DNA of 64,000 nt, from sequence record OR413581.1. The stretch is one strand, 5' to 3'. The notes beneath the pieces were generated by a model. That model was not told where the DNA came from and made no database searches. It saw only the letters and a program-made list of their open reading frames with translations. How positions within the stretch are numbered: the first letter of the stretch is position 1; the number at the start of each line of letters is the position of its first letter. The position numbers were made by a program, and so were the translations under genes. This document shows positions 10,015 through 41,847 of this stretch, piece by piece.

Positions 10015-10024
10015 GAATTAGCGA

Positions 10025-24523: not shown

Positions 24524-25015
24524 CTATTTATTTTCTTCTAACGGAACAATCGTAATCGGGGTAGGAACTTCGTCAATAAGGCCACCGCTGCAGCGAAAGA
24601 ACGTCATCCCTTTACCTTCCCCGGTATGCGGGTTCACATCCGAAAAAGAATAAGTAGGGCCATCGTTTACGGTTTTATTAATACGGTAATAACGTTCGCC
24701 TGTGGTGGTGTTAATATTCCCGTCGATTTTGCCGATCACGTCTTTAAACATCATCGGTGACTCTAGTTTGCCACCGTCCCACGTTGCTACCCAGTTTGCA
24801 CCCACATCCATTACTGTTACTGACCGCGGCATCATTTGTAGGTTGTCCAGTACCGGACGGTAGTCTACAAACTTCTCCTGCGTCCCTGTGCATGTATAAA
24901 TCACCAAGTCGTGATTCTTTACTGGTGTGGCGCTAAATTGCCCTATGTTGCTTGGCGACTGAACACAACCGGCCAACAGGTTTATAATCGCGAATACGAT
25001 AAATAGACGTTTCAT
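24524..25015 (-). CDS. lipoprotein
   Basis: MKRLFIVFAIINLLAGC: basic N, hydrophobic core, LAGC lipobox; AAGGA RBS. Confidence 0.75.
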   Translation of the reverse strand: MKRLFIVFAIINLLAGCVQSPSNIGQFSATPVKNHDLVIYTCTGTQEKFVDYRPVLDNLQMMPRSVTVMDVGANWVATWDGGKLESPMMFKDVIGKIDGNINTTTGERYYRINKTVNDGPTYSFSDVNPHTGEGKGMTFFRCSGGLIDEVPTPITIVPLEENK

Positions 25016-25707: not shown

Positions 25708-25745
25708 CCTACCTCCCTTCGGGGAGGTAGGGCCTTTATTTTCTT
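25708..25745. terminator. bidirectional terminator ending the - strand late operon
   Basis: CCTACCTCCC-TTCG-GGGAGGTAGG with A-rich and T-rich flanks. Confidence 0.85.
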
Positions 25746-25748
25746 TGC

Positions 25749-26420
25749 TTACATGCCGAGTGATTCGGACAATGTTTTTAATCCAGTGTAATCGCGCTTT
25801 TCAGCTAACTCACGGATTTGGCGTTTGTTATCTGCCATTGCTGAGTGCAACACTTGGTCACGTGCAACAATAGCGGCCAGCAACGCTTTACATTGGGCTA
25901 CTGTAAACGGACTGTGCTTAGTATTCAGCGTATCGAGCCAGTATTCTGGTGCGGTATCTGCCTGAATGTATTGACCGAGGATGGTACGCGACGATTCATC
26001 GGCTTGAAAGTGGCTACCTTCAAACTCGATATAACCATGGCGCTCATCTTCGTAGCGGTGGTCGAGTTCCAACAGCATTTTCTGCACGTCTTCGTAAATG
26101 TAACGTGCGGTAGATTTCAGATTCCCGCGAATTTCGTCGAGGTCAATCTCCAGCACATTAGCAATAAACTCTTTCGTGCGTTTCAATGTGAAGTTAGCTT
26201 CAATCTCCGACATCTCATACAGCTTCATGCGTGCCAGGGCTTCTTTATCAGACATCCCTTCGATGAGATGGTAATGGAGTAATGCACAAAATCCGGTACG
26301 GCCCTGATCCTGCGCACCGATTCGTTCCATGAAATTACCGTGACGATCAATCGGCAAATCACGCTGGAAATAACGGGCGCGGATCTCTTCGTTCGTTAAG
26401 CTTTTGTCAGTAACAGACAT
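25749..26420 (-). CDS. DUF4376-domain protein (tail-fibre associated)
   Basis: C-half GSHFQADESSR..YWLDTLN..F...CKALLAAI fits the DUF4376 pattern; GAGGAGG RBS. Confidence 0.65.
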   Translation of the reverse strand: MSVTDKSLTNEEIRARYFQRDLPIDRHGNFMERIGAQDQGRTGFCALLHYHLIEGMSDKEALARMKLYEMSEIEANFTLKRTKEFIANVLEIDLDEIRGNLKSTARYIYEDVQKMLLELDHRYEDERHGYIEFEGSHFQADESSRTILGQYIQADTAPEYWLDTLNTKHSPFTVAQCKALLAAIVARDQVLHSAMADNKRQIRELAEKRDYTGLKTLSESLGM

Positions 26421-26962
26421 TCGTCCTCCTCAATCAGGCCAAGTTCTAACAACAAACCGAAGTCCAGCATCTGGAAGTCCTGATCGAGGTTACCGGCCCA
26501 CAACAGAGAAATGTTGTGTTGCTCTTCTTCTTCCAACTGCGGGAGCAGGTGTTCTTCGAAGATTTGACGCTCTGTGTAATAAGCGTCAACCGGGTTATTG
26601 GAGCGTAAGTTACGAATACGCATCCGCGGGAATGACAAGCCCAACGCCACTAAACTTTCAGGACTGGCTTCATCAATAGAGTGACGTAGCAGTTCGATTT
26701 TGTGGCGTGGGTATGCAAGCAGTCGCTTCTCAAAGCCAGGGTTGCGCTTTTCGATTTCCGCGACAGACTCGTGTCCTTTCTCAACGCAGTAGACCGGGAT
26801 CATCACATTCAGCCCGTATTTAATCAACAGGCTTTGGATTTCATCAGTGAAGTCTTCCCCTGCCACAATTGCGTGCACATTGTACAGCTTGCTTTTGCGC
26901 AGGAAGCGATCGACCAAGTGCAGTTTACGCTTCGTAAAATTGTGAATCAGTATTGACTTCAT
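26396..26962 (-). CDS. hypothetical protein in the radical SAM cluster
   Basis: GGAG RBS before ATG 26962 (MKSILIHNF); overlaps both neighbours. Confidence 0.75.
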   Translation of the reverse strand: MKSILIHNFTKRKLHLVDRFLRKSKLYNVHAIVAGEDFTDEIQSLLIKYGLNVMIPVYCVEKGHESVAEIEKRNPGFEKRLLAYPRHKIELLRHSIDEASPESLVALGLSFPRMRIRNLRSNNPVDAYYTERQIFEEHLLPQLEEEEQHNISLLWAGNLDQDFQMLDFGLLLELGLIEEDECLLLTKA

Positions 26963-28253
26963 TCTGGGCTCCGTTTTGTAATTTTTCTGCTTCAGCACGT
27001 TGGCGTACACAACGTGAACAATAGCACATGGATTTATCATGCAAATCTGATGCGCGAGTCGTACCAGTTTTCTGATACCAATATTCCGCCGCCATCAGCT
27101 TCGCAGTAGTCCAACCACACTGACGACGCTCGGCGTGATACGCTTTACGGTCTTCCAGTGTACCTTCACCGTTTTCGTACGATGCTGCTGCGCAGCTACC
27201 GCAGCTGTGTTTCATCGGACACCCTAAACAGGTTTCTGGGTAGTTGGTGTACTGCGTTTGAATCTCTTCTAACAGCTTACCACCGTCCAGGCTCACAAAC
27301 TCACGACCGACCAGTTCCGCTACAGCAGAGCGGGAAGTTACCGTGGACATGAAACGGTTACAACCGTAAATCTTGCGATCAAAGCCGAGACAGGTCATGT
27401 GTGTCAACGTACCGCAGTACGGTTTCAGGCGTTCTGGGTCGAGACGAACAGAGTCGTCATGTAAGAGTTTGTCACGCCAATCCGGGTCCCAAGTTGCCAT
27501 AAAGTTCAGGCCATCCGGGATGATGTGTGTAATCGTGTTACGCGGGTTGGTGTGCAGACCCTTCTCAATCCAGTAGTCCATCACGTCCATCATCTGGTTC
27601 GCGATATCCAACGCCATATGGCGCGGCAGGATATCTTCGTACGTTACGTTACCAGAGATGGTACCACCGCCGGACATGTCAATTAACGATTTCATGCTGG
27701 CGGCATAGTGCGGCAATGTATCGATCGTAAACGTCGCCTTTACGCCCAGCTCAGCGATGCCAACACTCTTCAGATAATTGTAACCGCGTACCGCAGCTTC
27801 GTACGACCCTTCGCGCGTCGTGGTAAAGATACGATATTTGTCATGGACTTCAGGTAAACCATCGATGGAGACCCCAATAGACAGTTTGTCTTTCCAGCGC
27901 TCGATAATTTCTTTGTTCAGCGGACGGTCCAGAAGCGTACCGTTCGTGGAGATACTGAACATATACGGGCGATTGTGTTCTGCGCATAACTTCTCTGCGG
28001 TTTCAAAGGCCGCCAAAAGAAGTTTAGGCTGCATGAACGGCTCACCACCGATGATATCGATGATGACTTCAACATTCGGGATATCTTTATCACGCTCGAA
28101 ACAAGCGTGGATAAAATCAATCACGTCTGCTACTTTGTTGTTACGCGGATATTTACGCTCGTAGCAGTATTCGCAGTCCAGGTTACATGACAGGTTAGTC
28201 ACAACCTGATACGTGCGTGGTGTGTACTGGATTTGCTGTTCGCTATTACTCAT
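26925..28253 (-). CDS. radical SAM/SPASM peptide maturase, CXXX-repeat-target type
   Basis: CNLDCEYC, IIGGEPF, ISTNGT, SIDG..HD..R; SPASM cysteines YCG..C..GCNRF..CLGC..CGSC..C. Confidence 0.9.
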   Translation of the reverse strand: MSNSEQQIQYTPRTYQVVTNLSCNLDCEYCYERKYPRNNKVADVIDFIHACFERDKDIPNVEVIIDIIGGEPFMQPKLLLAAFETAEKLCAEHNRPYMFSISTNGTLLDRPLNKEIIERWKDKLSIGVSIDGLPEVHDKYRIFTTTREGSYEAAVRGYNYLKSVGIAELGVKATFTIDTLPHYAASMKSLIDMSGGGTISGNVTYEDILPRHMALDIANQMMDVMDYWIEKGLHTNPRNTITHIIPDGLNFMATWDPDWRDKLLHDDSVRLDPERLKPYCGTLTHMTCLGFDRKIYGCNRFMSTVTSRSAVAELVGREFVSLDGGKLLEEIQTQYTNYPETCLGCPMKHSCGSCAAASYENGEGTLEDRKAYHAERRQCGWTTAKLMAAEYWYQKTGTTRASDLHDKSMCYCSRCVRQRAEAEKLQNGAQNEVNTDSQFYEA

Positions 28254-29196
28254 TGTTCGCCGCCCGTTTACGCTTAGCAGAAATTACACGGTTGATGTAG
28301 TTATACGCATCAACGCCGATAGAACGCGCCAGGCGATTACAGCCGACTTCCAATATCTCTGGGGCGTTCTGAATTTGCTCCTGCGTACCGTCGGCGTTAA
28401 GCCACAGCACTTCACTGCACGTGTTGCACTCGGTATCGAACATTTTACTGATCGCGAGCCCACATTCAGAATCGTTCTGCATGTTAAGGCGTTCGATATT
28501 GTCGAGTATTTTCCAATACCCGTACATGAAGTTCATGACGTGGTCTGGCGATAACGGTTTCGGCATCATCGCATCAAACAACAACGACACACCACCTGGA
28601 CGGTAATGATAGATTGCTCGGTGCAGCTCGATGAAATCTTCGTACCAGCGTTTATCGCCTAACTGGTCACGCGTCATCACACCCCAGGTGTAATAGTTGT
28701 CCAGCTCGTACAGCACTTCCAGCGCTTCGTGATTACCACCGTTTACAAAGTTCATAAACGGACGTTCCGACTTCTTGTAGCCGTCAATGGACACAAAGAT
28801 AAGGTCGAACTGTTTCAGCAACGGCAGATGTGATTTACGCATCTTTAAACCGTTGGTGTACATGTGATGACGGAGGTTCGGATGAGACTCCTTCAGCTCG
28901 TTCACGAAGTCTTCAATCTTACGCTGCGCTAACAGCGGCTCACCGCCCGTCCAATGAATCTCACCGATATCCGGATTCTTCTCTAAAATCGAGAGAATCT
29001 CTTCACGTTGAAACTCACGAGAAGTATCTTCTCTATCCATGTAATAAGCCCCTCCACAGAAGCTACAGTCTAAGTTACACTTAGAAGTTGCGACAACCGA
29101 CAGAATTGACGGTTTGTCGTACAGTTCAGACGAGATCCTGGATTCTACTTGATCTGTCATTGCAGGTTGCTCCAGTATATTTTTAAATATAATCAA
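28246..29196 (-). CDS. second radical SAM protein
   Basis: CNLDCSFC, WTGGEPLL, YTNG, VSIDG; short C-terminal CNTC...C. Confidence 0.85.
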   Translation of the reverse strand: MIIFKNILEQPAMTDQVESRISSELYDKPSILSVVATSKCNLDCSFCGGAYYMDREDTSREFQREEILSILEKNPDIGEIHWTGGEPLLAQRKIEDFVNELKESHPNLRHHMYTNGLKMRKSHLPLLKQFDLIFVSIDGYKKSERPFMNFVNGGNHEALEVLYELDNYYTWGVMTRDQLGDKRWYEDFIELHRAIYHYRPGGVSLLFDAMMPKPLSPDHVMNFMYGYWKILDNIERLNMQNDSECGLAISKMFDTECNTCSEVLWLNADGTQEQIQNAPEILEVGCNRLARSIGVDAYNYINRVISAKRKRAANNE

Positions 29197-30070
29197 TGGC
29201 GAATAAAGGATCTTCGTCTACGTTAGCGCCAGGCACCAGTAACATCGGGTCGTGATAGGCAGCTAAAATTTTGTTCAGGTCGGCGTGTCTTTCGTTCAGA
29301 CGTTTCAAATCGGCCAACGTTACCGAACGACCACGAATCTCAGAAACAGCTTCTGCTTCTTCTTTCGTTAAATCCACCTTCGTTAAGAGGAAACTTACCA
29401 GCTTACTCAAATCCGCTTCTGTCGCCGGGTAATCCCCATATCGAGTTTGAACCAGGTGTTGCATCCACGGCTTACGAATACGTTTGGTGATTTCAAAATC
29501 GTCAGTCAGCGCATGCCAGACAGAACGCTTTTTATCCCACACGAACTTATAGCTATACGCCATCATGTCCGCTAAACGGGTGATGCCGAGTTCTTTATAC
29601 CCCTCGATATCGATGTATGGTTCGGTGTCGAAATACGTTTCCGTATCGGCAGGTACCAGTACAAAGTAGTAAGGGAAAGAGCCCAGATAGTCCGGACTCC
29701 ACCAACGGCGCGCCATTGGTTTTGCTTCAAGTTCGTCAAACGGTGTAAACATCAGCTCTAAATCGACGCTGTTGTTCAAAATCCCTTCACTGAAGAAATA
29801 CTTACCGTCGACTAACACGCCACGAGAGTTACCATCACCGTTAAAGATAACGATGGCCTCTGCAACCATATCACGGATCTTAAACGTATTTTCTACGGTG
29901 TAGTTCTTCTTGTCGGTCAAGAAGCGACCACGAACCTTTGGCCACTCACCAGGAATCTGTGCAATCAGTCTGACTTTGTCAGCGAGGTGTGCACGCACTG
30001 AATCTGGGGATGATAGATGCAGCGGGTGGTTGAATGTGGTTTTATACGCAAGATGCAAATCGTTTTTCAT
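29183..30070 (-). CDS. hypothetical protein in the radical SAM cluster, 295 aa
   Basis: GGAG RBS; overlaps the rSAM start by 14 nt. Confidence 0.8.
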   Translation of the reverse strand: MKNDLHLAYKTTFNHPLHLSSPDSVRAHLADKVRLIAQIPGEWPKVRGRFLTDKKNYTVENTFKIRDMVAEAIVIFNGDGNSRGVLVDGKYFFSEGILNNSVDLELMFTPFDELEAKPMARRWWSPDYLGSFPYYFVLVPADTETYFDTEPYIDIEGYKELGITRLADMMAYSYKFVWDKKRSVWHALTDDFEITKRIRKPWMQHLVQTRYGDYPATEADLSKLVSFLLTKVDLTKEEAEAVSEIRGRSVTLADLKRLNERHADLNKILAAYHDPMLLVPGANVDEDPLFAIDYI

Positions 30071-30092
30071 TTAATACTCCGAACGTTTTCTG

Positions 30093-30299
30093 TTATCGAT
30101 TCCCCGCTCCACGGCTACAGCTTCCGCTGCAGGACCAGCTACACCCACCATTACAGTTATAGTGAGAAAGCGGTAAACCAGCCAGGTTGTTCGTGGTCGA
30201 CACGGTGCCCTGGTTAGCGATGTAGTTGTTTGCCTGTGCGGTTGTAATGTAACCTTCTACCGTAACGAGACGGTTTCGAATAGTCTTGAGACTGATCAC
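30093..30299 (-). CDS. Cys-repeat precursor peptide 3 (68 aa, 4 Cys)
   Basis: GGAGG RBS, GTG start; leader homologous to peptides 1 and 2; HYNCNGGCSWSCSGSC. Confidence 0.8.
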   Translation of the reverse strand: MISLKTIRNRLVTVEGYITTAQANNYIANQGTVSTTNNLAGLPLSHYNCNGGCSWSCSGSCSRGAGNR

Positions 30300-30314
30300 A
30301 TAAGCCTCCGTCAG

Positions 30315-30719
30315 TTAGGAGTTAGGACCTGAACAACCACCAGAGCACGCACCTGAGCAGTTTGCGGAGCAGGATTTACCACAACCCCCAGAACAGCTGC
30401 CTGTGCACGTGCCGCTACAACCACCAGAGCACGAAGAGCTACAGCCCGTGCAGCTGCTGCTACAGCCTGATACACAGTTTGCCGAGCAAGTCGACCCACA
30501 ACCACCTGTCGCAGACCCTGTGCAGCCGCCAGAGCAACTTGAGCAGCTAAAAGAACACGTACCACCACAGTCGTAGTGCGAACGACCTTGACCTGCGAAC
30601 AAGTCAGCGTTATTCGTAGCTTTATTGCGAATGTAGTTTTGCACATTCGTGGTATTCTTTAGAGCGTTTGCATCGATCGTGTTTAATCGGTTATTCAGTT
30701 CTTTTAATCCAATTGCCAT
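30315..30719 (-). CDS. Cys-repeat precursor peptide 2 (134 aa, 20 Cys)
   Basis: 50-aa leader then CxxxC repeats flanked by S/G/T/A. Confidence 0.9.
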   Translation of the reverse strand: MAIGLKELNNRLNTIDANALKNTTNVQNYIRNKATNNADLFAGQGRSHYDCGGTCSFSCSSCSGGCTGSATGGCGSTCSANCVSGCSSSCTGCSSSCSGGCSGTCTGSCSGGCGKSCSANCSGACSGGCSGPNS

Positions 30720-30729
30720 TTAATCCCCC

Positions 30730-31122
30730 TTAGCGACCTGAACAGCCGCCGGAGCAGGCCCCGGAACAACTGGAAGAACATGAGCCACCGCAACCACCTG
30801 TGCAGTTACCGGTACAGCTACTACTGCAACCACCAGAACAACCAGAGCAACCAGAACAGTTACCGCCACACGTCGAAGAACAGCTACCGATACAAGAAGC
30901 AGAACAGCTTCCTGAACAGCTCGAACAGCCGTGCGAGCAACCGTTAGAGCATGTCCAAGAACATGTCCCGCCGCAATCTAGCTGTGCTTTCGTCCAACCC
31001 CCAAATCGGTCTGCCGCATTATGGGCTTTAGAGGCCACTTGCGCCTCGATGCGGGGGCCTGTCGCCATGTTAGCTTCGACTATCTGGACGCGGTTTCTGA
31101 CGTCTTTAATAGATATCGCCAT
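30730..31122 (-). CDS. Cys-repeat precursor peptide 1 (130 aa, 21 Cys)
   Basis: AAGGA RBS; 49-aa leader then CxxxC repeats. Confidence 0.9.
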   Translation of the reverse strand: MAISIKDVRNRVQIVEANMATGPRIEAQVASKAHNAADRFGGWTKAQLDCGGTCSWTCSNGCSHGCSSCSGSCSASCIGSCSSTCGGNCSGCSGCSGGCSSSCTGNCTGGCGGSCSSSCSGACSGGCSGR

Positions 31123-31187
31123 TACGCTTCCTTAAAAAGTAGAACGAGCGGACTATGTCCATAAACATAGTCCGGCTCGTAAACAAG

Positions 31188-32390
31188 TTACTTAGTACCC
31201 GCTTCAGCTTGAACATCGTCGCGCGAGGTGAGGTTGTTGTTGACGTGAACAGCAGCCTGCACAACACCGCCATACTGTTTATGGAGGTAATTCGGGTGTG
31301 GGTTATCCGCAGCCGCATGGTTCGCCAGATTCTGGTTTGCCTGCGAAATTGCGTTGGTGTTGTTTATAACCTGAGTTTTAAGACTGTTGATTTGTCCTTG
31401 CAGGTTATCAATTTGCTGTTGGAAGTCCTTGCCCTGATTCTCAAGATCCGTGACGCGCTGATTTGTTTCATTCAGTGCAGACTGCAGATCGTTAACCATC
31501 TTCTGTAATTGCAACACCAGAGAATTAAGGTTAGCTAATGCTAACGACATTTTCTGGTAATTTTGAGCAACCACATTAAGCTGGTCGTTCCACGCGGCTA
31601 ACGAAGCCACAATTGCATCGATGCGTTTCCCCAACGCCGTGTCTGCTGCTCTTAAGTCGCCGATATCTTTGATAGTGGCGTCAATGGCAGTCTGTACACT
31701 TTGAATCAGAGCACGAATCTCCGTCTCCGTCAGGCCATTAACCTGATGAATGTCGAGATTGTGTACGTTACCTTCGGCGTTGATGTGGGTATTTAAGGCG
31801 TCGAGGAAGTCGTTTTTCAGACCGTCCAGAATACCTTTAATTTCTTCCAGCTGTACTGCAGAGCCGGAGTTAATCGCATCTTTAATCCCCGCGAGTACGG
31901 TAATGATATACTCAAAACCGTAGATATCGCCAAGGTCTTTATACGTCGGGGCGGACGGGAACGTATCGGGTACGTTTCGAAGATCCTTGAAGTCCACCAC
32001 ACGGTCTTCAATTTTCAACGACGCAATCGCTTGTCGGATGCCTTCGACGTTCGCAGACTGAAAACCACCAACGACTTGCGCAGAGACTTCGATATCAGTA
32101 GGAATGGCCGAGTTAGTTACCACCACACCCATGACCACTTCGCGGTTCTTGGTCATTTTCTGATATGCAGTATGTGCAAAAATCAGCTCGTAGTCTGTAC
32201 CACGTTTGTACGGGTAGACACCCGGTTTGTTCGCAGCCGCTAAGCGGAAAGTATCCGCGTAGAAAGCTCCGTCAGGAAATGCAAAAGCCCGGTTAACTTT
32301 ACCAGAACCTAACGTAATACGCCGCGTAACGGCGTTCGACGTTAATGTCCCGGTAAGGTCGAGCGGGTACTGATAAATGATTTCGGCCAT
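31188..32390 (-). CDS. tail-fibre-family protein with long C-terminal coiled coil
   Basis: AAGGAG RBS before ATG 32390; YQYPLDLTG, AFY..L..G.DY N-domain shared with upstream giants; heptads; HAAADNPH motif. Confidence 0.8.
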   Translation of the reverse strand: MAEIIYQYPLDLTGTLTSNAVTRRITLGSGKVNRAFAFPDGAFYADTFRLAAANKPGVYPYKRGTDYELIFAHTAYQKMTKNREVVMGVVVTNSAIPTDIEVSAQVVGGFQSANVEGIRQAIASLKIEDRVVDFKDLRNVPDTFPSAPTYKDLGDIYGFEYIITVLAGIKDAINSGSAVQLEEIKGILDGLKNDFLDALNTHINAEGNVHNLDIHQVNGLTETEIRALIQSVQTAIDATIKDIGDLRAADTALGKRIDAIVASLAAWNDQLNVVAQNYQKMSLALANLNSLVLQLQKMVNDLQSALNETNQRVTDLENQGKDFQQQIDNLQGQINSLKTQVINNTNAISQANQNLANHAAADNPHPNYLHKQYGGVVQAAVHVNNNLTSRDDVQAEAGTK

Positions 32391-32437: not shown

Positions 32438-35400
32438 TTAGGTACGGAACATAAGATTGACCTGGATAACATTAGCCTGTTGCCATCCTCTCTCGTTCAC
32501 CCAATCGTGCGCAATCGTTAACGTAAGATCATCGCCATCCCACGCCACGATCGGTGGTGGGAATAAACCCTGAGCGCCCGTGGTAACAACCGGAATTGCA
32601 CCCGCCACATCCACAAACGTGTAGCTACGGCTGTTAAAAACAACTGGTGTGCCGTTGGTCTCTCCCGCCGCTGGTAAGATTTGAATCTTACTATCCGAAA
32701 GATCGGTGGTGATTGGTAGACCCCCAGCGTCCGTGAAAAGCCAAGAGCAAATATGCTGGTTAGCTGTTTCGAGCGCTGAAGAACTTACCGCCGCGACAAA
32801 TGTAAAGGTGCACGGCACGCCTGCTGGCAGAGAGTGCTGTTTGTGGTGCACGGTATGTGGTGACGGCAATAACACTTCTGGATTTTCGTCAATGTTAACA
32901 TCCGTACCTTCCGCCTCGACGTTGTAGAAAAAGCCATCCACAGCCTCCCATGGGGCAACGTGGACATTAAAGGTCGTTTCTACTCCCGGTGTACCTGGGA
33001 CGACGAATTTACTTTGCACCACCACCATCAGGTTTGTTGAGGTCGGAGAGAAAGCAGGCGTAGGGATACCTACCCACTCCATTCCCAACGATGCCGCTTC
33101 ACCGTTCTCATCGGCCGTTACCGTCGCAATTGTTGTAGGATGTTTCCAAAACGCCCCCGACTTGTTTGCCTGAGTAAACGCCGGCAAAGTTTTCAAGCCT
33201 TCGAAACGTTTGGAGACCATCGCTTTACCGCGACGCTGTGCGTCAGATACGGTATAAAGCAACTGACTATCCAGATAGCCTTTCGTAGCATCGATCGACA
33301 AAGGACCCATCGCTTCTTTACGCAATGGTGCCAGTCTGCCCGTTGCTGCATCCCTTCCCACTTCCACATCATGCTTATTCTCAACCGCCGCATGTTCCAA
33401 CAGTTGTTTCACCGCCCCCAATCGCTTAGCATGTTCGACGTTAGTCTCGACGACTCGCGACGTGCCCGTTTTAACATACCCGATATAGAGTTCCGTTTCA
33501 GTGTCTGGATGTCGAATCACGTCCATTACGTACTTCGGTGTACCATTTTCTACCTTGGCGTACAGGTAGAATGTCCGGTTCTGATGGTTTGTTGGAAATG
33601 CTGCGCTGAGGTCAATATACCACGTAGGCAGCCTATAAGTGCTCGAGCCGAAACGCAGGTCAACTTCCTCAGTCACATATACCAGCCAACCTTCGGCTGT
33701 TTCCACACCAGCAATGACGACCGATTCAGTCGGGCCACTAAAATTAGGAGCCGCGACAAAATCACTCGACGACATTGCGATACCACCACAATAGACGTAG
33801 TCGAGAGATGAGTTGTGTAGCATCACCTGATCACGATGAGCCAGATAAGCTGGGCTGACTGGAGTGTGGGATGGTGCCATGCGTCCAATGCCGTGTGGAG
33901 CAGAAGAACGCGTCCAGGTACCGTTAGACAGCGTAAGACCAACACCGTAGTTAAGCGCACCCAAGTCGCCAATTTGGCGCAAGGTTAACGTGTGTGGAAG
34001 ATACAACCCGAACTGAGTACCATCTACTGACACCAGTGTAGGTTGTCCCGGCCGGCGTGTTTTTCCTCCCGTTATCTCGCCCAACGTAGCATAGTTCAAG
34101 CCATAGTCGAGGTTGTTATAGAAGTCAAACAGTGCCAATATCGCTGCTGGGAATGTTACCTGCCCGTTGCTGATTGTTGGTTTCAGTGTAAAGTAGTAGA
34201 TATCCAACAAGTTAACATTGTTCACAGTACGCGTACATGCTACTTGTGCTAATGTAAGCGGCGTGGCTGTACCGATACCGATGAACCAAACGGAGAACAG
34301 TGCCTTTCCTGCGTTATTTGCGGCAAGAATATATTCCGAAGCATAACCATTCGCAGCGCCTGCCGGTGCTCCGTCGATGATCATCTGCTTCATCTTATCC
34401 CATTCAGCTTGTGACAGCGTCAATCGATCGGCATGAATCGTGAAAGTGCCGGAAACGTTGTGGTAAGGGAATGTTTCTGGTCCTGTGCAATACCAGCCGT
34501 TTAACTCTGTACCAGGCGACGTCGGTGTAACAATGTGGCACATCTGCGACAGATTCTCATACGTGAGAGAATCTACTAGACGACGATTGTTAGTTGGGCC
34601 ATACCCCGCCTTACCTGAGTAAGTGGTGTTCGGATCAAACTCAACTTCAATTGCCAAGCGGGTACGCGGCTGTGACAACCAGATAAGTCTGGAATTCGCT
34701 CCCAGAGTCAGCGGATACGCCATACCCAGCTCGTAGATAGAACCACGACCTTGGTTTAACATTACCGCACTAAAACTTCTGGCAGTGAAGTTGTAGTCGC
34801 ACGACAGGTACTCGTACCAACTCACACCGTCATCTAACGTTGTAATCGTGACATAAGGCATTAGGTCGCGATCGCCTGCATGTCCTTGCGAAACGATATA
34901 CTTGTCTTGCGATGTTGCAAAGGTTCGGTTATTAGCTTGACCTTCGCCCCATTTCCGGCTCGGAATCCCAATCTCAGCGCCACCGTTATAACGAACCGTG
35001 GTAAGATCGGCCACAATAGGGAATCGATCAGCACCTTCCAGCGTTATCGTCATTGAACTACAATCAACAACAAAGCTTGACACCCATTGTTTAAAGTTAA
35101 TAGTTTGCCCTGTAGTAGAAGCAAACCAAACCGTTGGAGTTAAACCAACACGAAAGTTCAGCCCATCCACACCAATCGCGTGATTACATTCCGGACCATG
35201 GACGAAATTTCGCGCACTATTCCACTTCGCCGATGCGTCTGCGTAGATTTGTGTTACTGGCGCTACCAACACATCTGTATCAGAACGTTTCTGACCCTGA
35301 CGCAAGTAGATATTATCTCCCGACGTTAACATCCCACCTGTTAACACATCCGCCACAAACGTGTTGCTACCACCCGGATTAAGTTCGTCGAGTGCGATGC

Positions 35401-37621
35401 TACGCATACTCACGAAATAGTCACCGGAGGTAAGCACAGTACGGAGCAGATAAACCCGCTCGTTGCAAACGATCAAATCGTTTGTTGATGGATCAACAAC
35501 CCATGGAGCGGTTGTAATCACACCGGCCGCGTTACCATTTCGGTAATCGCCCAACTGAACTTTAACAACACGATGATGTTTTGCATGGTCAATGGTGCCG
35601 TCAAAGATGACCAGGTAGTACGCACCGTCACTGCCTAAGCAGATCATTGCATCTGTACCGGTAATCACAATAGCAACCAGATTCACCCCAGGATACGCCG
35701 ACATTCCAGCGGGTCGATAACGTACGGACGTCTGCTGCATATTTTCCAGCGTATTGCTTGGCGACACATCAGCATAGGCGTAATAGATAGCCCAGTCACC
35801 TGGTGGATTTCCGTTAGAACCGTTACGGAGCGAGTAAACCTTACCAGACTCGTAACGCGCCAAACCTTTCTGCCAGGTTTGGTTTTTGGTATACCCTTCG
35901 TAGTTCCCCTGGACTGGTATAGGCAAGAAGTTATTGTTGCCGTACGATGATCCGCCGACAGTCCACGCCGGTAATAACGTAGCAATCTTGTCATTCAGCG
36001 TGTCAATCTTCTGTTCAAGCAAGAAACCTTGGCGCGAAGTGACCATCTTATCCGAGGTAGTGTCGATTGCATCCCACAGTTTAGCCAAACCTGTAACAGA
36101 CGTGGATGCGTACGGCACGTTATCGAGATCTGCAATGGTGTGGGTGTGCGTTGTAAGCGCTTTGCCTGATAGCACGGTACGCAATGCGTTAGTAACAGGC
36201 TTTTCTAACGGTCCGGTATTGTCCATTTTCTCAATACCGAAATCTGCCGCGGTTAAGGTCAGATGCATCTGCCCGTTTGAATCTATTACAAACCCTTTAC
36301 CATTGACCGTATACGTGTCGTCCACATATCCGTCGAGTTTGTTCTTCAAGTCAGTAACAGCTTTTTGGGAAATCGCTGTGGACGCTGCAGCGGATGCCGA
36401 GAGGTTAGTAATCGCAAACAAACCCTGCACAGTTGTGGTTGCTGCAGGCAGCTCCGCATTCATGTAAACTTTGTTTGTTTCTTTACCAGAGCCGTAAATC
36501 TTCAACGTGTCGCTGGACTTGAAGTAGGCGTTTGCTGGAAGTATCTTCACCGAGGTCAAGTACATCTTAACCATATCCGGTGTAACGAGATACACGCTGT
36601 TATACACAGGTGCAAGCACACCTGCATCATAAGCGCCCCACTTGTCACCTGCTTTACCCGAGTGAACCCAAAGCGTGTTCAGGCCAGCACTGAACTCCGT
36701 AGCGATACCCGGTTCGTTGTTATCCTGGTCAGATTTTAATACCAGCGGTTTTGTCGAGGTGATGATGAACTTCTCACCTTTCATGCTGATAACGTGACCA
36801 GACGTTGTTTGGAACGTAATCGCGTCGTTATTCAGAACACGCATACGGCCCAGTAAATCACCCAGGGTATTATCCAGAAGCATGTCAACGTGTTTCTGTT
36901 GGATACCGCTGGTAGACATTAGCGTCACTAACTCTGCCAGTGTACGTCCAAACGCTTTAGTCGCATCCACGGCCTTACCGAGCACAGGGAGTGCGCCAAT
37001 GTCACCGCAGGTGTAACCATGTGCATTTTTAATCAGGTGGTGTTGATACATTTCGTCATCAAACACCTGTTTACCGTTCTGATAAATCAAATCGGTAACT
37101 TCGGCAAATGCCTCATCCAGTTCGTGGGCGCGCTCTAAAATACCCAGACGGATATCTTCCAACGCCTTTACGATTTCATCGCGAAGAATCGCTTCTTCGA
37201 GATCTTTTGGCGGGTCGATTGGCGAGATAATCGGTGGATATTTCATCAGCTCAGACCAATCGCAGTTGCGCGGGTCTTTCATATCCGTCTTAACCAGATA
37301 CTTGCCGATTTCAGAAGCAGGGATGCGATACTGTCGACCAACCGACAACAACTCGTATTCTACCTCTGTGGCGTTCAGCAGCATTATGCTGCCGTATATT
37401 GCATCGTTCTCAGCCTCGGCTAATTCCTGGAAGTAATGTCCTAAGAAATAATCAAGACCTTCTATTAACTTGCGTTTGGTTCCGGTTGTTTTATCGGTAA
37501 CGGTTAACGTTAACCCGATGCGATAGAACGGTGCTTCGACGGGAATGACCGTCGAATAACGGTTCGGGTAAGTAGCGGTACTGAGGGTACCGTTAAACTG
37601 CGCCGCATCTTCTCTCGGCAT
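32438..37621 (-). CDS. giant tail fibre protein (~1727 aa)
   Basis: AGGAG RBS before ATG 37621; APFY..G.DY N-domain, H..T..D.GA, HTH motifs. Confidence 0.8.
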   Translation of the reverse strand: MPREDAAQFNGTLSTATYPNRYSTVIPVEAPFYRIGLTLTVTDKTTGTKRKLIEGLDYFLGHYFQELAEAENDAIYGSIMLLNATEVEYELLSVGRQYRIPASEIGKYLVKTDMKDPRNCDWSELMKYPPIISPIDPPKDLEEAILRDEIVKALEDIRLGILERAHELDEAFAEVTDLIYQNGKQVFDDEMYQHHLIKNAHGYTCGDIGALPVLGKAVDATKAFGRTLAELVTLMSTSGIQQKHVDMLLDNTLGDLLGRMRVLNNDAITFQTTSGHVISMKGEKFIITSTKPLVLKSDQDNNEPGIATEFSAGLNTLWVHSGKAGDKWGAYDAGVLAPVYNSVYLVTPDMVKMYLTSVKILPANAYFKSSDTLKIYGSGKETNKVYMNAELPAATTTVQGLFAITNLSASAAASTAISQKAVTDLKNKLDGYVDDTYTVNGKGFVIDSNGQMHLTLTAADFGIEKMDNTGPLEKPVTNALRTVLSGKALTTHTHTIADLDNVPYASTSVTGLAKLWDAIDTTSDKMVTSRQGFLLEQKIDTLNDKIATLLPAWTVGGSSYGNNNFLPIPVQGNYEGYTKNQTWQKGLARYESGKVYSLRNGSNGNPPGDWAIYYAYADVSPSNTLENMQQTSVRYRPAGMSAYPGVNLVAIVITGTDAMICLGSDGAYYLVIFDGTIDHAKHHRVVKVQLGDYRNGNAAGVITTAPWVVDPSTNDLIVCNERVYLLRTVLTSGDYFVSMRSIALDELNPGGSNTFVADVLTGGMLTSGDNIYLRQGQKRSDTDVLVAPVTQIYADASAKWNSARNFVHGPECNHAIGVDGLNFRVGLTPTVWFASTTGQTINFKQWVSSFVVDCSSMTITLEGADRFPIVADLTTVRYNGGAEIGIPSRKWGEGQANNRTFATSQDKYIVSQGHAGDRDLMPYVTITTLDDGVSWYEYLSCDYNFTARSFSAVMLNQGRGSIYELGMAYPLTLGANSRLIWLSQPRTRLAIEVEFDPNTTYSGKAGYGPTNNRRLVDSLTYENLSQMCHIVTPTSPGTELNGWYCTGPETFPYHNVSGTFTIHADRLTLSQAEWDKMKQMIIDGAPAGAANGYASEYILAANNAGKALFSVWFIGIGTATPLTLAQVACTRTVNNVNLLDIYYFTLKPTISNGQVTFPAAILALFDFYNNLDYGLNYATLGEITGGKTRRPGQPTLVSVDGTQFGLYLPHTLTLRQIGDLGALNYGVGLTLSNGTWTRSSAPHGIGRMAPSHTPVSPAYLAHRDQVMLHNSSLDYVYCGGIAMSSSDFVAAPNFSGPTESVVIAGVETAEGWLVYVTEEVDLRFGSSTYRLPTWYIDLSAAFPTNHQNRTFYLYAKVENGTPKYVMDVIRHPDTETELYIGYVKTGTSRVVETNVEHAKRLGAVKQLLEHAAVENKHDVEVGRDAATGRLAPLRKEAMGPLSIDATKGYLDSQLLYTVSDAQRRGKAMVSKRFEGLKTLPAFTQANKSGAFWKHPTTIATVTADENGEAASLGMEWVGIPTPAFSPTSTNLMVVVQSKFVVPGTPGVETTFNVHVAPWEAVDGFFYNVEAEGTDVNIDENPEVLLPSPHTVHHKQHSLPAGVPCTFTFVAAVSSSALETANQHICSWLFTDAGGLPITTDLSDSKIQILPAAGETNGTPVVFNSRSYTFVDVAGAIPVVTTGAQGLFPPPIVAWDGDDLTLTIAHDWVNERGWQQANVIQVNLMFRT

Positions 37622-37716: not shown

Positions 37717-40700
37717 CTAAGAGGCCCACTCACCCGAGTTGTTGCCTTCGTTTCTACGTTCAGTATCCAACGTTTGTAAAATCCAATCCCATGTCCTGGT
37801 GGGGATGTGGAATGGATTACGCTTCTCAATGAGAATCGTCTCGCCACCAGTGCGAAGTTCCACCGGTGTCGTTTCAGTAATCACGAACATCGGATTACCA
37901 CTACTGCCCACGCCATTAATAGTGAACTTCGCTTGCAGCGGCGGCACAGAACCTTCCGGAGGCACGAACACGATGTGAATTGGCTGCATCGGTTTCGTGC
38001 GGGCAAGAGTCCCAGATATCTGAACAGCTGTTGTCGATGCACTGAAAGGTATAACATTACCCGGAATTTTCTCACTACCCACGATGATATATCCAGGGTA
38101 GTTAGAGAGCATTGTCCCATTTACCGACACAAAACGCTCATTTTGAGTTGGGCGATAAGCCCGCATAAAGCCGTACTTCCATTCACCACCGTTAGACGTA
38201 TAGTCTGCAGGAGCCGACTCAAGTAGCGGAGCACCACGTTTCTGCAGCCCTTTGTAAAACGGTGCGGGGAGTTTACCGTTCGGTGCAAGTTCCGGATAAC
38301 CCTCACTTGCAGCAGACATCGTGATGTATTCCGTAACCGGGTTATCGACGTTATCTCCAAAGTTCGCGAACGTGACGGTTGATATCGACATCTCCTCATG
38401 CCCAGAAGACTGGCTGTCTGGAGAACGCTCAATATACGACTCAAATAGTGAGCGTAGATAATGGAAACGATTTAAATCTACTTCTGTTGTGGAGGGGTCC
38501 ATCAAACCGTGGTTGATTGTGACGCCTTCACCAGTTTCGATGCCAGTAACACTAATCGATAAAGCGCCACCTTTAAAATAATCAATCGCGTCAAACGGAA
38601 CGTCGTATTCTATCTCACGAACAGTTGCCGAAGCCTGGCCACCTATCTTACTAATCGTCGATATTCGCAGTATCTGCGTATCAACAATATAGCGATAACG
38701 AATAAGCCAGCGCGAACCAATGGCTGCGAACTCGCTAGCGATTGAAACCGGGAGATAGTCTAAACAGTCAGGCGACTGAACATCCACGCTCTTGATTACA
38801 CGAGGAGCATCAACCAGCGTATTAGTAACGCTGGATTGTGTGCTGGCAATTCTTCCGGTTGGTTTATCGTACGGCGCGGCAATAAAGCCACAATTTAAAC
38901 TGGTCTTGGAGTTACTCCACCGCAGGACTCTGGTTTTACCTTTCTCATCAGCAGAAGGGGCCATGAAGTTTAATGAAACTTCGACGTCCGAGGTTTTTGG
39001 GACTTCAGGATAATCAGTGTCGATTACCACCGAACCCTCGAATGTCGCCATTCCGTTTTCTTTCGGGTTGCTTGGTGTAAACCAGCAATACGGGGACGCG
39101 TTTTCAGTGGAAACAACCGCCGCAAGAAGAATCCTAAGCGAGGTGGCACTTACGAATTTATAATCAAATAACCCACGATCTAAACGAACGAGGTTATCCC
39201 CAGAAACAGACGGGTTAGTTGGATACGCATACAGCCATTGTTTAGGTAATGGATCAACCTTATTCAACGGCAGCATTTTCGGGTTATCCGTCAACGACCA
39301 GTCGGTGTTACTCACCCCGTGTGCTAGACGTGTTTCGAAGTGCCGTTTAAGTTCGGACGCCATGCCGAAGTCAAACGTCGTTTCAAACTCGTAAGTCGTG
39401 CCTGCAACCAATCCCGCGTCAGGGACATCGATGTGGCCGATATAGCCGCGTTCCAAGTTAATACCTTCCGTGTCCACAATAGGTTCGGCGCGCGAATATA
39501 ACGCATCGGTTATCATGTTCACATAGAGGTAATGCCTTAAACCGTTCGGCGTCTTAACAAACTCCTGCAGGCGGGCAACTTTGGTGTTTTTATCCGAGGC
39601 CCCAACCGCAAAGTCACCGTCGTAAATTGTGAAACGAATTGCGGCTGCTTTAGCGCTATCGTTACATTCTGCACGGAATGCTAAGCAGTGTTGCTTCCAC
39701 CCCTCTTTGACAGTCGCCTCCAGATACCCCGCTTCTGTAATACCCGCACCGATAATTTCACCGTCCAGATAAACAGAAACAGCACCACCGCCACGAACCC
39801 AAATCCGCAGCTTACCAGAGTCGCAACGAACCCACGTTTTCGCCAAGAGGTTAACGACCGACAAATCACCCATTCCGGTTGTCGTTAAACCAATCTGCGC
39901 ACCGTAGTTCGTTTCCGGGACGGCAACCTCAAACCCACTAAAATCAATACCGGCACCGGTATTAATTACCGCGTTCTGCCACGTTCTTTCCATACGGTTA
40001 TCTGGAGAGAACCACTGGAACATCGGTGTGGTTTGCAGGTCTATCGAACCAGATACCGTCCCCTCTTTACGTGCACCATTTAACAGATAGAAATAATTCA
40101 AATCCGTTACGGCGAGGGTGGTACGTGTAGATCCCACAGTCCAAGTCTTACCACGCACAGCGGCAAAATCGGTCACGGAATCCTCTTTCGCGTTTGCTAG
40201 CGCAGCTGCAACTACGTCTAAACGTTTTGACAAATCGTTCAGAACGTTCGGGGTAACGCCGCGATTATCCGACAAGCCGTTTAGGTTGGTAGAATATCGA
40301 GCGGTACCGGGAACTGTTTGAGAAGCCGTTGGGATCTGTAAATCGGCGAAGTTGTGATGGTGACCTTTATCACTAAGACCGGTAACTGCTTCTGCCAACG
40401 CATCAGAAAGTGGTTTATCGACGTCAGCTGTGTTATCAGCCAAGTCCAGACCCAAATCCTTTTTCGTTAGCGTTCGGCTACCAGTGTCCATCGGCTGGTT
40501 ATTCAGCAGCGTTGTCTTCCTGACGTACGAAGACAGGTCACCCTCGTACGGTAAGAGCGAAGCTGGGGTGACTGCTTGTCCCTTGACTACATCGCTCGGC
40601 TTATCAGTCAGCGTCACAACGCCGGGTTCAGAGGTCGTCGCGGGTTTGGCTGTGACCTTCCCGGTGACGGGATCGGCTTTTGACCCTTTACCCGTGAAAG

Positions 40701-41847
40701 TAATGCCGTTCACCCCGCTAATGTACAGTTTGTTGTCATCCGGGTCAACGGTACCACCGCCGGTACCAGGGTCTTGTTGATAGCCCATGAGAGCAGTTGT
40801 GGTCAGTAACGTCGTACCATTAAGCGTCAGCTTATCCATCCCCAAGGCACTGCCAGTCGACTCAATACGTAATGTATTGATGCCTGCTTTCCACTCCATA
40901 AACCGGACGGTTCCAGTAGTGTCGGCATACCCACACGCCAACACAACAGAGCCATTAGATTTAAGAGTGAATGCCTCAGCAGAGAACACAATTTCGGATT
41001 CACCAGCAGGAGAACGGAACAGGGCACGAGTACCGGATATCGTCGCATTAAACACCCCTTTGGATTCTTTCGATACCCATTTAGAAATGTACTTGTCGAT
41101 ATCCGATTGTTGCAGACCCAGTGCACGGACCTCGCTGGTTAACTGACGCAACGTCTTTCCATACGCCAGGAAAGTATCTGGCGTTTTCAGGTTGACAGGA
41201 TGCGCACCGGCCTGCGCCGCGGTAGTCCCATGAGGGTTAGTCGACGCAATGTGTCCGGGGTAGTTAAATGCGGCGATTTCAGTTCCTAAGCCCAAAACCG
41301 CATCTTTCAGCTCAGTAAGCTTTTCACGAATCTGCTCGTTGGCCGCCCCGGCATCTAACTCCACATCATGCACTGCAGAGGCAACATACTTTTTATTCAG
41401 CATGTCTGACCAAGCTACCGCTGCAGGGGTGGCTGGGTACAGGGAGGGTCGATTACCTAAAAGCAGCCAATCTGCAGCCGTTGGGTTGTTGAGTGCCTTA
41501 ATTAGCTCATCCAACATCTCAATCAAACCACTGTAAAACGTACCCCCAAGCATCTGGCCTTCAAAGACCACCGCACCACGCAGTTTAGGGTTAATAAGAT
41601 GCACCCCGCAAAATACCGGGGTCGTCACCGAGTCGTCCAACGGTGTTAAAGCATACTCCAGCTCATAGTCCGTCCCGCGGGTAAGCGGTATGGACGAGCC
41701 GGCGAGCCTTACCACCAATCCTTCGAAAAACGGGCGATGATCTAGCATCACCACCCGATCGTTAGGATTGTCGGAGTCGATGATACGTTCCTCGATGAAG
41801 TGACACTCAGGATTTACACCCCGAGGATCGTAAGGATACGTTTTCAT
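37717..41847 (-). CDS. giant tail fibre protein (1376 aa)
   Basis: YPYDPRG..PFF..G.DY; HIASTNPHGTT; DNTAD.DKP.S; HHH motif; paralogue of neighbours. Confidence 0.8.
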   Translation of the reverse strand: MKTYPYDPRGVNPECHFIEERIIDSDNPNDRVVMLDHRPFFEGLVVRLAGSSIPLTRGTDYELEYALTPLDDSVTTPVFCGVHLINPKLRGAVVFEGQMLGGTFYSGLIEMLDELIKALNNPTAADWLLLGNRPSLYPATPAAVAWSDMLNKKYVASAVHDVELDAGAANEQIREKLTELKDAVLGLGTEIAAFNYPGHIASTNPHGTTAAQAGAHPVNLKTPDTFLAYGKTLRQLTSEVRALGLQQSDIDKYISKWVSKESKGVFNATISGTRALFRSPAGESEIVFSAEAFTLKSNGSVVLACGYADTTGTVRFMEWKAGINTLRIESTGSALGMDKLTLNGTTLLTTTALMGYQQDPGTGGGTVDPDDNKLYISGVNGITFTGKGSKADPVTGKVTAKPATTSEPGVVTLTDKPSDVVKGQAVTPASLLPYEGDLSSYVRKTTLLNNQPMDTGSRTLTKKDLGLDLADNTADVDKPLSDALAEAVTGLSDKGHHHNFADLQIPTASQTVPGTARYSTNLNGLSDNRGVTPNVLNDLSKRLDVVAAALANAKEDSVTDFAAVRGKTWTVGSTRTTLAVTDLNYFYLLNGARKEGTVSGSIDLQTTPMFQWFSPDNRMERTWQNAVINTGAGIDFSGFEVAVPETNYGAQIGLTTTGMGDLSVVNLLAKTWVRCDSGKLRIWVRGGGAVSVYLDGEIIGAGITEAGYLEATVKEGWKQHCLAFRAECNDSAKAAAIRFTIYDGDFAVGASDKNTKVARLQEFVKTPNGLRHYLYVNMITDALYSRAEPIVDTEGINLERGYIGHIDVPDAGLVAGTTYEFETTFDFGMASELKRHFETRLAHGVSNTDWSLTDNPKMLPLNKVDPLPKQWLYAYPTNPSVSGDNLVRLDRGLFDYKFVSATSLRILLAAVVSTENASPYCWFTPSNPKENGMATFEGSVVIDTDYPEVPKTSDVEVSLNFMAPSADEKGKTRVLRWSNSKTSLNCGFIAAPYDKPTGRIASTQSSVTNTLVDAPRVIKSVDVQSPDCLDYLPVSIASEFAAIGSRWLIRYRYIVDTQILRISTISKIGGQASATVREIEYDVPFDAIDYFKGGALSISVTGIETGEGVTINHGLMDPSTTEVDLNRFHYLRSLFESYIERSPDSQSSGHEEMSISTVTFANFGDNVDNPVTEYITMSAASEGYPELAPNGKLPAPFYKGLQKRGAPLLESAPADYTSNGGEWKYGFMRAYRPTQNERFVSVNGTMLSNYPGYIIVGSEKIPGNVIPFSASTTAVQISGTLARTKPMQPIHIVFVPPEGSVPPLQAKFTINGVGSSGNPMFVITETTPVELRTGGETILIEKRNPFHIPTRTWDWILQTLDTERRNEGNNSGEWAS

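Follow-up and report, generated by a model that had tools for sequence, protein, structure and literature searches.

A Putative Tail-Fibre-Tip Maturation Module With Two Radical SAM Enzymes in the Salmonella Jumbo Phage SPLA3

Introduction

A 5.4-kb region of the Salmonella jumbo phage SPLA3 (OR413581.1, genus Seoulvirus), a relative of the model jumbo phage SPN3US, encodes three small Cys-repeat proteins (here termed A, B and C), two radical S-adenosylmethionine (SAM) enzymes and the counterparts of SPN3US gp165, gp162 and gp161. The region lies at 25749-31122 of the window, i.e., the whole 64,000-nucleotide stretch that was analysed, in which each position equals the SPLA3 position minus 124000; it is 100% identical to SPLA3 and 98% identical to SPN3US, where it corresponds to genes 161-166, and the tail genes 167-170 stand upstream of it. 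This cluster probably constitutes a module for the maturation of tail-fibre tips, in which radical chemistry of the kind associated with peptides that are made by ribosomes and modified after translation (RiPPs) would act on stand-alone tip proteins. By their sequences, A, B and C appear to be free-standing versions of a Cys-repeat domain that forms the distal end of fibres in other phages, and since this repeat is the far end of fibres in unrelated phages, the enzymes most likely modify a fibre tip and not an antibiotic-like peptide.

The cluster had first been singled out in an original prediction, made from the DNA letters of the window, according to which the product may be a crosslinked or metal-loaded fibre or virion component rather than a secreted RiPP; for this, the prediction relied solely on where the genes lie. 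The fibre role is backed by seven loci in which the repeat is fused to a fibre and by a chaperone family represented in the cluster, whereas the proposed presence in virions and the proposed thioethers found no support.

The Cys Repeat on Tail Fibres of Unrelated Phages

Full-length homologues of the SPASM-type radical SAM enzyme (SPN3US gp163) that share at least 63% identity with it are confined to the SPN3US-like group of jumbo phages, with representatives from Salmonella, Escherichia, Proteus, Erwinia and Cronobacter. In four genera of this group (Seoulvirus, Machinavirus, Wellingtonvirus and Derbicusvirus), the same gene order is kept, i.e., large fibre protein, gp167-like protein, A, B, C, gp165-like protein, short radical SAM enzyme, radical SAM/SPASM-type enzyme, gp162-like protein and DUF4376 protein, so that the cluster retains its synteny with tail-fibre genes across these jumbo phages. 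This constancy from the fibre to gp161 is one argument for a fibre-tip module.

A stronger view of the repeat is offered by more distant relatives. Below 47% identity there is a gap among the homologues of the SPASM-type enzyme, and the next group, at 30-39% identity, falls entirely within the tail modules of phages that differ greatly from the SPN3US-like ones (P2-like and lambda-like phages, and other jumbo phages), beside a fibre or fibre-like protein with a C-terminal repeat, which argues for a role of the module at the fibre tip. At seven such loci (L006, L007, L009, L014, L015, L016 and L017), the Cys repeat is fused to the C-terminus of the fibre or fibre-like protein encoded beside the homologous enzymes. 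In L006 (a Deferribacter prophage), L009 and L014, a side fibre that ends in the Cys repeat is encoded after the gene of a lambda J-like central fibre. The P2-like loci L015 and L017 carry, in this order, the baseplate genes J and I, a Cys-tipped fibre, the genes of an accessory protein and of radical SAM enzymes, and sheath and tube genes, and L007 and L016 lie on contigs of 213 and 284 kb and have Cys-tipped fibres of 568 and 437 aa, respectively.

Several of the fused proteins belong to recognized fibre families: PF12571, a tail-fibre N-terminal domain of Pfam, is present in the L015 fibre (E 1.8e-40), and PHROG tail-fibre families are matched by the proteins of L014 (E 2e-40) and L016 (E 1.4e-31). 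Over the repeat, the L006, L007, L009 and L017 proteins match phrog_6085, the family that is also matched by A (E 1e-40), B (E 3e-41) and C (E 2.8e-25). In the same four proteins, as in those of the window, the repeat opens with C-x(1-3)-C-S-W-[S/T]-C after a short L-x-G-containing stretch. A homologous domain is therefore found at the C-terminus of recognized fibres within tail modules, and its linkage to tail genes, expected if the original prediction was right, holds over four tail architectures.

The partner proteins recur together with the repeat, as gp165-like proteins and short radical SAM enzymes are encoded in most of the fibre-linked loci. The helical C-terminal domain of gp165 matches the proteins whose genes neighbour the Cys-tipped fibre in L006 (E 8e-10) and L009 (2e-7), and hhalign comparison gives probabilities of 96, 97 and 93% for L014, L016 and L017, respectively; the match in L015 is weak, and no gp165 homologue was found in L007. 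A homologue of the short radical SAM enzyme is present in L006 (E 2e-14), and a 651-aa ORF (open reading frame) of L016 (7242-9197) joins a short-radical-SAM-like domain to a SPASM-type enzyme. As called, the first domain of this fusion lacks the three-Cys motif. Both the recurrence of these partners and the fusion of the two enzymes in L016 favor the fibre-tip module. So does gene position: in P2-like phages, the gene of a fibre-assembly chaperone usually stands right after the fibre gene, and in L015 and L017 this place is occupied by the module, which directly follows the fibre gene.

The fibre-linked relatives of the SPASM-type enzyme score 144-183 bits on TIGR04115, the enzyme family of the CXXX-repeat system. 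Viral loci with still more distant enzymes (24-28% identity) include true TIGR04115 members (L018, 434 bits; L037, 455 bits), and in almost all of them a Cys-repeat protein is encoded beside the enzyme. At least two of these loci stand in tail context, as L021 is preceded by a baseplate wedge gene and L058 by a tail-fibre gene; the Cys-repeat protein of L021 scores 43.6 bits on TIGR04114, above the cut-off.

Two further observations were made among the relatives. Just after the radical SAM genes of L009, inside its prophage-like tail module, a 180-aa protein (9876-10418) carries a thrombospondin type 1 domain (PF19030, E 4.9e-13), which is unusual for a phage. On cellular contigs of Margulisiibacteriota and Termititenax metagenome-assembled genomes (L090-L093), proteins of ~500-670 aa with 79-119 Cys, nearly all in C-x3 repeats, are encoded beside SPASM-type relatives (28-31% identity).

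The fibre fusions also bear on the reading of the cluster as a classical RiPP locus, in which a 49-residue leader would precede a crosslinked core that is freed when the cell lyses and serves as a toxin, a signal or a peptide against defence systems. The leader-core-like layout, the presence of three paralogous precursors beside maturases and the relationship to the families TIGR04114 and TIGR04115 speak for it. However, other phages have tail fibres of 258-568 aa that contain the homologous repeat, and the linkage to tail genes extends over all the tail architectures described above. Moreover, peptidase and transporter families gave no match to any of the eight ORFs (NCBIfam, Pfam and PHROG profiles), as the original prediction had also stated of exporter and protease genes; no immunity gene match was obtained, and the maturase has no N-terminal recognition domain, so that the cluster falls outside a strict definition of RiPP loci. 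A released RiPP is thus improbable and, because of the fibre fusions and the lack of a protease or exporter, it is the weakest of the three alternatives considered here, the other two being a metal-binding tip and a disposable assembly scaffold (see below). The lack of a protease, exporter and recognition domain counts in turn as support for the fibre-tip module.

Radical SAM Enzymes and Their Partners

The 442-aa SPASM-type enzyme has the three-Cys motif CNLDCEYC at residues 23-30, and its cysteines C280, C288, C298, C342, C345, C351, C354 and C379 are conserved in 20 homologues. It aligns to the PapB-family model over residues 22-357, and no separate Pfam SPASM match was obtained at E <= 0.1. 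Its scores lie below the cut-offs of both TIGR04115 (125.6 against 350 bits) and the PapB family (113.6 against 340 bits). Two traits of TIGR04115 systems are nevertheless present, namely a radical SAM motif combined with a SPASM-type C-terminal Cys set, and a Cys-x-x-x repeat gene in the neighbourhood. The mention of TIGR04114 and TIGR04115 in the original prediction hence pointed to the right neighbourhood, as these are the best NCBIfam matches, but both curated cut-offs are missed. Among solved structures, the best match is CteB (PDB 5WGG/5WHY, E 3e-10). The radical SAM core starts at about residue 106 in CteB and already at residue 22 in the window enzyme, which consequently lacks an N-terminal recognition domain. 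That the closest relatives of the enzyme (TIGR04115, the PapB family and CteB) are thioether-forming maturases is in line with the proposed maturation of a fibre tip.

The short radical SAM enzyme probably acts as a partner of the former. It has a few conserved C-terminal cysteines and no full SPASM domain, and it starts at an ATG with a Shine-Dalgarno sequence (29160) or, alternatively, at a TTG (29196). When the eight ORFs were compared with defence and immunity families, only generic radical SAM-core similarity to pVip was found; a viperin-like or defence role was rejected, as this similarity is limited to the generic first ~100 residues of the core.

The gp165-like protein is a candidate substrate adaptor or fibre-tip chaperone. 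Its AlphaFold2 (AF2) model (predicted local distance difference test score, pLDDT, 90) shows two domains, the N-terminal one rich in beta structure and the C-terminal one helical. Foldseek found no match in the PDB, where the best E was 0.3, and in BFVD it retrieved nothing but the orthologue of the protein, so that assignment to a known fold, recognition element or known chaperone was rejected in spite of the confident model. The family is rare, with 49 clusters among 1.84 billion representative proteins.

Homologues of gp162 occur only in SPN3US-like phages. Its AF2 model (pLDDT 89) has an alternating beta/alpha, radical-SAM-core-like fold that lacks the cluster cysteines, and Foldseek matches SkfB, ChlB and QueE at probabilities of 0.95-0.98 but at E-values of only 0.007-0.02. 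The fold search is suggestive of a degenerate radical SAM paralogue, but these E-values are weak, and hhalign comparison with a radical SAM profile (probability 0.2%) does not support homology.

The last protein, gp161, is probably a tail-fibre chaperone by analogy with characterized members of its family. As the original prediction had indicated, it is a DUF4376 protein: PF14301 matches the C-terminal residues 121-205 at 38.8 bits, above the Pfam cut-off of 25. It is also non-virion and encoded in a fibre module, and its possession of the DUF4376 domain of proven tail-fibre chaperones (see below) is a further reason to consider the cluster a fibre-tip module.

Combining these elements, the module might work as follows. 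The CteB/PapB-like enzyme, together with the short radical SAM enzyme, would act on the C-[S/T]-G-x repeats while these are in the reducing cytoplasm at a late stage of infection. The most likely product would be a ladder of small intramolecular thioethers, each linking the sulfur of a Cys to a carbon in a Ser, Thr, Gly or Asn nearby. Since the maturase has no recognition domain of its own, the gp165-like protein would probably present the substrate, and gp161 would serve as the fibre chaperone. The modified A, B and C would then be mounted on the fibre apparatus formed by gp167-170.

The Cys-Repeat Proteins A, B and C

In protein A, the N-terminal part has 49 aa and is followed by an 81-aa core built from C-[S/T]-G-x units, and across the A and B cores the repeat unit is C-[S/T]-G-[S/T/G]. 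The spacing between successive cysteines is four in 17 of 20 cases in A and in 16 of 19 in B, and both proteins display the Cys at each fourth residue over many units that distinguishes TIGR04114. Protein C shares its N-terminal part and the C-x-G-x-C-S-W start of its core with A and B, and in the phages CR5 and Kwan only two cysteines are left in this core. Therefore, the description of the three as CxxxC-repeat peptides applies to A and B, but C, with 4 Cys, is barely a repeat protein. On TIGR04114, A, B and C score 19.6, 17.1 and 13.7 bits, all under the cut-off of 20, which A misses narrowly. Their genes are located 1.8-2.9 kb upstream of the SPASM-type enzyme gene, on the same strand.

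None of the three genes is annotated in the SPN3US GenBank record, and the SPLA3 record holds no annotation between 30071 and 31187; many assemblies do list protein C, as a hypothetical protein. As judged from sequence comparison, the Cys reading frame is the real coding frame, on several grounds besides the phrog_6085 matches of all three proteins. A hidden Markov model (HMM) of the 49-residue N-terminal part alone finds A, B and C of SPN3US-like viral contigs outside its training set (E 1e-13 to 1e-24), all three peptides are found together in the four phage genera that were read directly (including CR5, Kwan and Machina), the length differences between phages are in frame, and the ratio of nonsynonymous to synonymous substitution rates (dN/dS) in the Cys frame is 0.09-0.45, with synonymous sites saturated. 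Additionally, a Shine-Dalgarno sequence precedes each gene. That the ORFs merely reflect open frames in low-complexity DNA has almost no probability. In its favor, this DNA is open in further frames as well, including that of SPN3US_0166, an annotated 111-aa Ala/Val-rich wrong-frame ORF that overlaps B (window equivalent 30311-30646, minus strand). Against it stand the conservation of the N-terminal part (E down to 1e-24), the Shine-Dalgarno sequences, the in-frame length differences and a dN/dS well below 1 with saturated dS.

The composition of the cores raises the question of what the cysteines are for. They could stay free and form metal- or iron-sulfur-binding tips along the fibre axis, with the radical SAM enzymes performing some other modification. 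In agreement with such a role, cysteines stand at each fourth position with small residues in between, repeated His-x-His motifs are present upstream in the fused fibres of L006 and L009, and the A, B and C cores, which contain no Asp, Glu or Gln, lack the Asp/Glu acceptors of characterized ranthisynthases. In contrast, the nearest characterized relatives of the SPASM-type enzyme all make thioethers on Cys, and the repeat strictly co-occurs with a SPASM-type enzyme in about 80 viral loci, as would be expected if it were the substrate. A metal-binding tip thus seems to us a poor bet, and modification of the repeat itself remains the preferred reading.

Fibre Tip or Assembly Factor

The published proteomics of SPN3US give a first indication of which products end up in the particle. 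In the virion proteome, gp167-173 are listed, gp167-170 being assigned to the tail, whereas gp161-166 are not. In a data set of 2023, gp161, gp162 and gp163 were detected at 2-4 spectra and labelled non-virion. The three proteins, seen at trace level, are thus made during infection without being structural, as expected of assembly enzymes, which is consistent with the fibre-tip module.

An alternative is that A, B and C, or the fused repeat elsewhere, are assembly factors that nucleate or cap fibre trimerization and are then released or cut off, in the manner of known intermolecular and intramolecular fibre chaperones. This seems unlikely, although it has points in its favor: the gene of a DUF4376 chaperone ends the cluster, the cluster proteins that were detected are non-virion, A, B and C do not figure in the published virion lists, and the repeat always occupies the extreme C-terminus, where fibre folding reportedly starts. 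On the other hand, the absence from virion lists is uninformative, as the genes are unannotated; profile searches of the cluster ORFs revealed neither a protease nor a self-cleaving domain; and two radical SAM enzymes seem a costly investment for a disposable scaffold.

Several observations weigh against a fibre-tip module built on A, B and C. First, the absence of Asp and Glu from the cores implies that the characterized chemistry of PapB, QhpD and CrpC cannot apply as such. Second, the 49-residue N-terminal part shows no significant similarity to the fibre shafts of distant relatives: the leader-only HMM matches at E < 0.01 only in SPN3US-like phages, and the L006 and L009 fibres are hit just below threshold, in exactly the right register (best distant E 0.033 and E 7.7), so that homology to these shafts is suggestive only. 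Third, gp167 has no similarity to the L007 and L017 fibres, which leaves unsupported the idea that an ancestral Cys-tipped fibre split and that gp167 is its former shaft. Fourth, A, B and C are absent from the published SPN3US virion lists. Since their genes are unannotated in the GenBank record, they were probably missing from the search databases; furthermore, the 2023 search treated all Cys as fixed carbamidomethylated residues, and modified core peptides could not have matched. Fifth, by analogy with some fibre chaperone domains, the C-terminal repeat could be cut off after assembly.

Finally, the junction between the fibre genes and the cluster leaves their co-transcription not established. 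The 65-nt spacer between gp167 and protein A contains a terminator-like hairpin (31149-31174), contrary to the earlier statement that no obvious terminator occurs at this junction. A hairpin of -18 to -27 kcal/mol is predicted, from single-sequence folds, at the same place in seven of the seven phages compared. The stem sequences differ between phages, and all have TATG in or beside the loop; a U-rich tail follows clearly in four of the seven and is weaker in the window, where this is the sole hairpin of its kind. RNAalifold on a MAFFT alignment of the junction yielded no consensus structure, because the stems are mis-registered in the alignment. The hairpin may be a terminator, possibly a leaky one, or else an attenuator, a processing site or another RNA element. 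In contrast, the far end of the cluster is closed, as originally described, by a bidirectional terminator with a 10-bp stem (7 G-C pairs) and T-rich tails on both strands.

Cluster Layout and Neighbouring Features

All eight ORFs of the cluster are present on the minus strand as first reported (Table 1), and their description as overlapping or nearly abutting is accurate, with genes that either overlap or are spaced by 10-22 nt. The upstream genes gp168-170 encode virion and tail proteins of paralogue family C.

Table 1. Features of the cluster and its surroundings (window positions).
Feature	Position	Strand	Description
Bidirectional intrinsic terminator	25708-25731	both	closes cluster
gp161, DUF4376 protein	25749-26420	-	PF14301
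gp162	26396-26962	-	188 aa, phrog_7988
Radical SAM/SPASM-type maturase (SPN3US gp163)	26925-28253	-	442 aa, CNLDCEYC
Short radical SAM enzyme (SPN3US gp164)	28246-29160	-	304 aa, CNLDCSFC, Pfam Radical_SAM E 1e-15
gp165-like accessory protein	29183-30070	-	295 aa, phrog_8030
Short paralogue C	30093-30299	-	68 aa, GTG start, 4 Cys
Cys-repeat protein B	30315-30719	-	134 aa, 20 Cys
Cys-repeat protein A	30730-31122	-	130 aa, 21 Cys
Conserved hairpin between gp167 and protein A	31149-31174	-	predicted folds
gp167, tail protein with long coiled coil	31188-32390	-	directly upstream neighbour
gp168	32438-37621	-	large paralogous baseplate/tail-fibre protein
gp169	37717-41847	-	large paralogous baseplate/tail-fibre protein
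gp170	41860-45573	-	large paralogous baseplate/tail-fibre protein

Beyond the cluster, a 163-aa ORF at 24524-25015 (minus strand; SPN3US gp159) has a signal peptide that ends in a lipobox-like L-A-G-C. It stands alone on its strand between endolysin-like genes and the head gene gp160, and may encode a phage lipoprotein.

Identical or near-identical copies of phage proteins from the whole window (P0001-P0030 and P0195-P0209) occur on ~240-kb contigs in many isolate assemblies of Salmonella and E. coli; the SPASM-type enzyme is found on 598 contigs, and one protein C variant on 230. This suggests that the phage often accompanies sequenced isolates, either in a carrier state or as contamination. 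In the SPFM records (LR535901, LR535903-LR535908, LR535911-LR535913 and LR535917), the region matches in at least 40 pieces of >99% identity that cover ~46% of the query, and the deposited proteins are fragmentary, which looks like a problem of sequence quality and not biology.

Broader Implications

The literature searched contained no paper that links SPASM enzymes with tail fibres, no prior description of such a system under SPN3US radical SAM, CXXX repeat or the TIGR families, no experimental study of the TIGR04115 family and nothing useful on SPN3US transcriptomics; the Goslar structure preprint does not mention the cluster genes.

More broadly, radical crosslinks could be a widespread, unrecognized way of building fibre tips, with the CXXX-repeat family (TIGR04114/TIGR04115) functioning mainly as a fibre-tip system and the tip of SPN3US-like phages consisting of armoured A, B and C mounted on the fibres. 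This wider proposal is put forward tentatively, and we rate its chances at somewhat under even. A, B and C equal in number the three fibre paralogues gp168-170, and a mixed trimer is also conceivable. To our knowledge, the covalent crosslinks known up to now from phage particles, such as those of the HK97 capsid, are self-made. If the proposal is true, a dedicated radical SAM set that modifies the receptor-facing end of a fibre would represent a new principle in virion assembly, and it would provide a biological role for "orphan" Cys-repeat/SPASM-enzyme systems that are now filed under natural products. As fibre tips decide phage binding, an enzyme-made tip would matter for host recognition and particle stability. 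Additionally, since even this well-studied phage still has unannotated genes, the SPN3US virion proteome may be incomplete.

Comparison With Known Systems

Like the CXXX-repeat system, in which TIGR04115 enzymes are paired with TIGR04114 or TIGR04117 targets, the window cluster has a SPASM-type enzyme gene that adjoins genes of proteins with a Cys at every fourth residue, and this system gives the best NCBIfam match. The true TIGR04115 members described above (434 and 455 bits) likewise stand on viral contigs beside Cys-repeat proteins. The clade of the window is set apart by a gp165-like accessory protein peculiar to it and by the short enzyme as a second radical SAM protein, and the window proteins score under the family cut-offs.

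The nearest characterized enzymes are PapB (ranthipeptides) by profile and CteB (SCIFF peptides) by solved structure, both of which form Cys-to-carbon thioethers. However, the family scores are below the cut-offs, CteB has the N-terminal recognition domain that the window enzyme lacks, and the A, B and C cores are devoid of Cys-x3-Asp/Glu acceptor motifs, which together with the PapB-family score places them outside PapB-type ranthipeptides.

The DUF4376 proteins V22 gp27 and A5 gp9 of Alteromonas phages have been proven experimentally to be tail-fibre chaperones. They share the C-terminal DUF4376 domain with gp161, which scores above the Pfam cut-off and is non-virion. Whereas the V22 and A5 chaperone genes directly follow their fibre genes, gp161 is separated from the fibre genes by seven genes.

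The closest published work is that on CrpA and CrpC of Methanococcus voltae (TIGR04463; PMC13692751), where a SPASM-type enzyme also has a large Cys-rich repeat protein, and not a short peptide, as its substrate. CrpC installs thioether crosslinks on CrpA, and a 47-residue N-terminal part common to its substrates helps enzyme engagement (PMC13692751). Unlike the window cores, which are free of Asp, Glu and Gln, CrpA has C-x-x-Q/D motifs, and CrpC has a predicted recognition domain of the kind that the window enzyme lacks; moreover, CrpA is a cellular protein whose function is unknown (PMC13692751), whereas the window proteins are viral. A last parallel is QhpD, which crosslinks QhpC, a structural subunit of quinohemoprotein amine dehydrogenase and not a natural product (PMC13692751). 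QhpD forms three Cys-Asp/Glu links in a subunit of a cellular enzyme and has a recognition domain (PMC13692751), in which it differs from the window system, but it sets a precedent for a SPASM-type enzyme that crosslinks a protein subunit.

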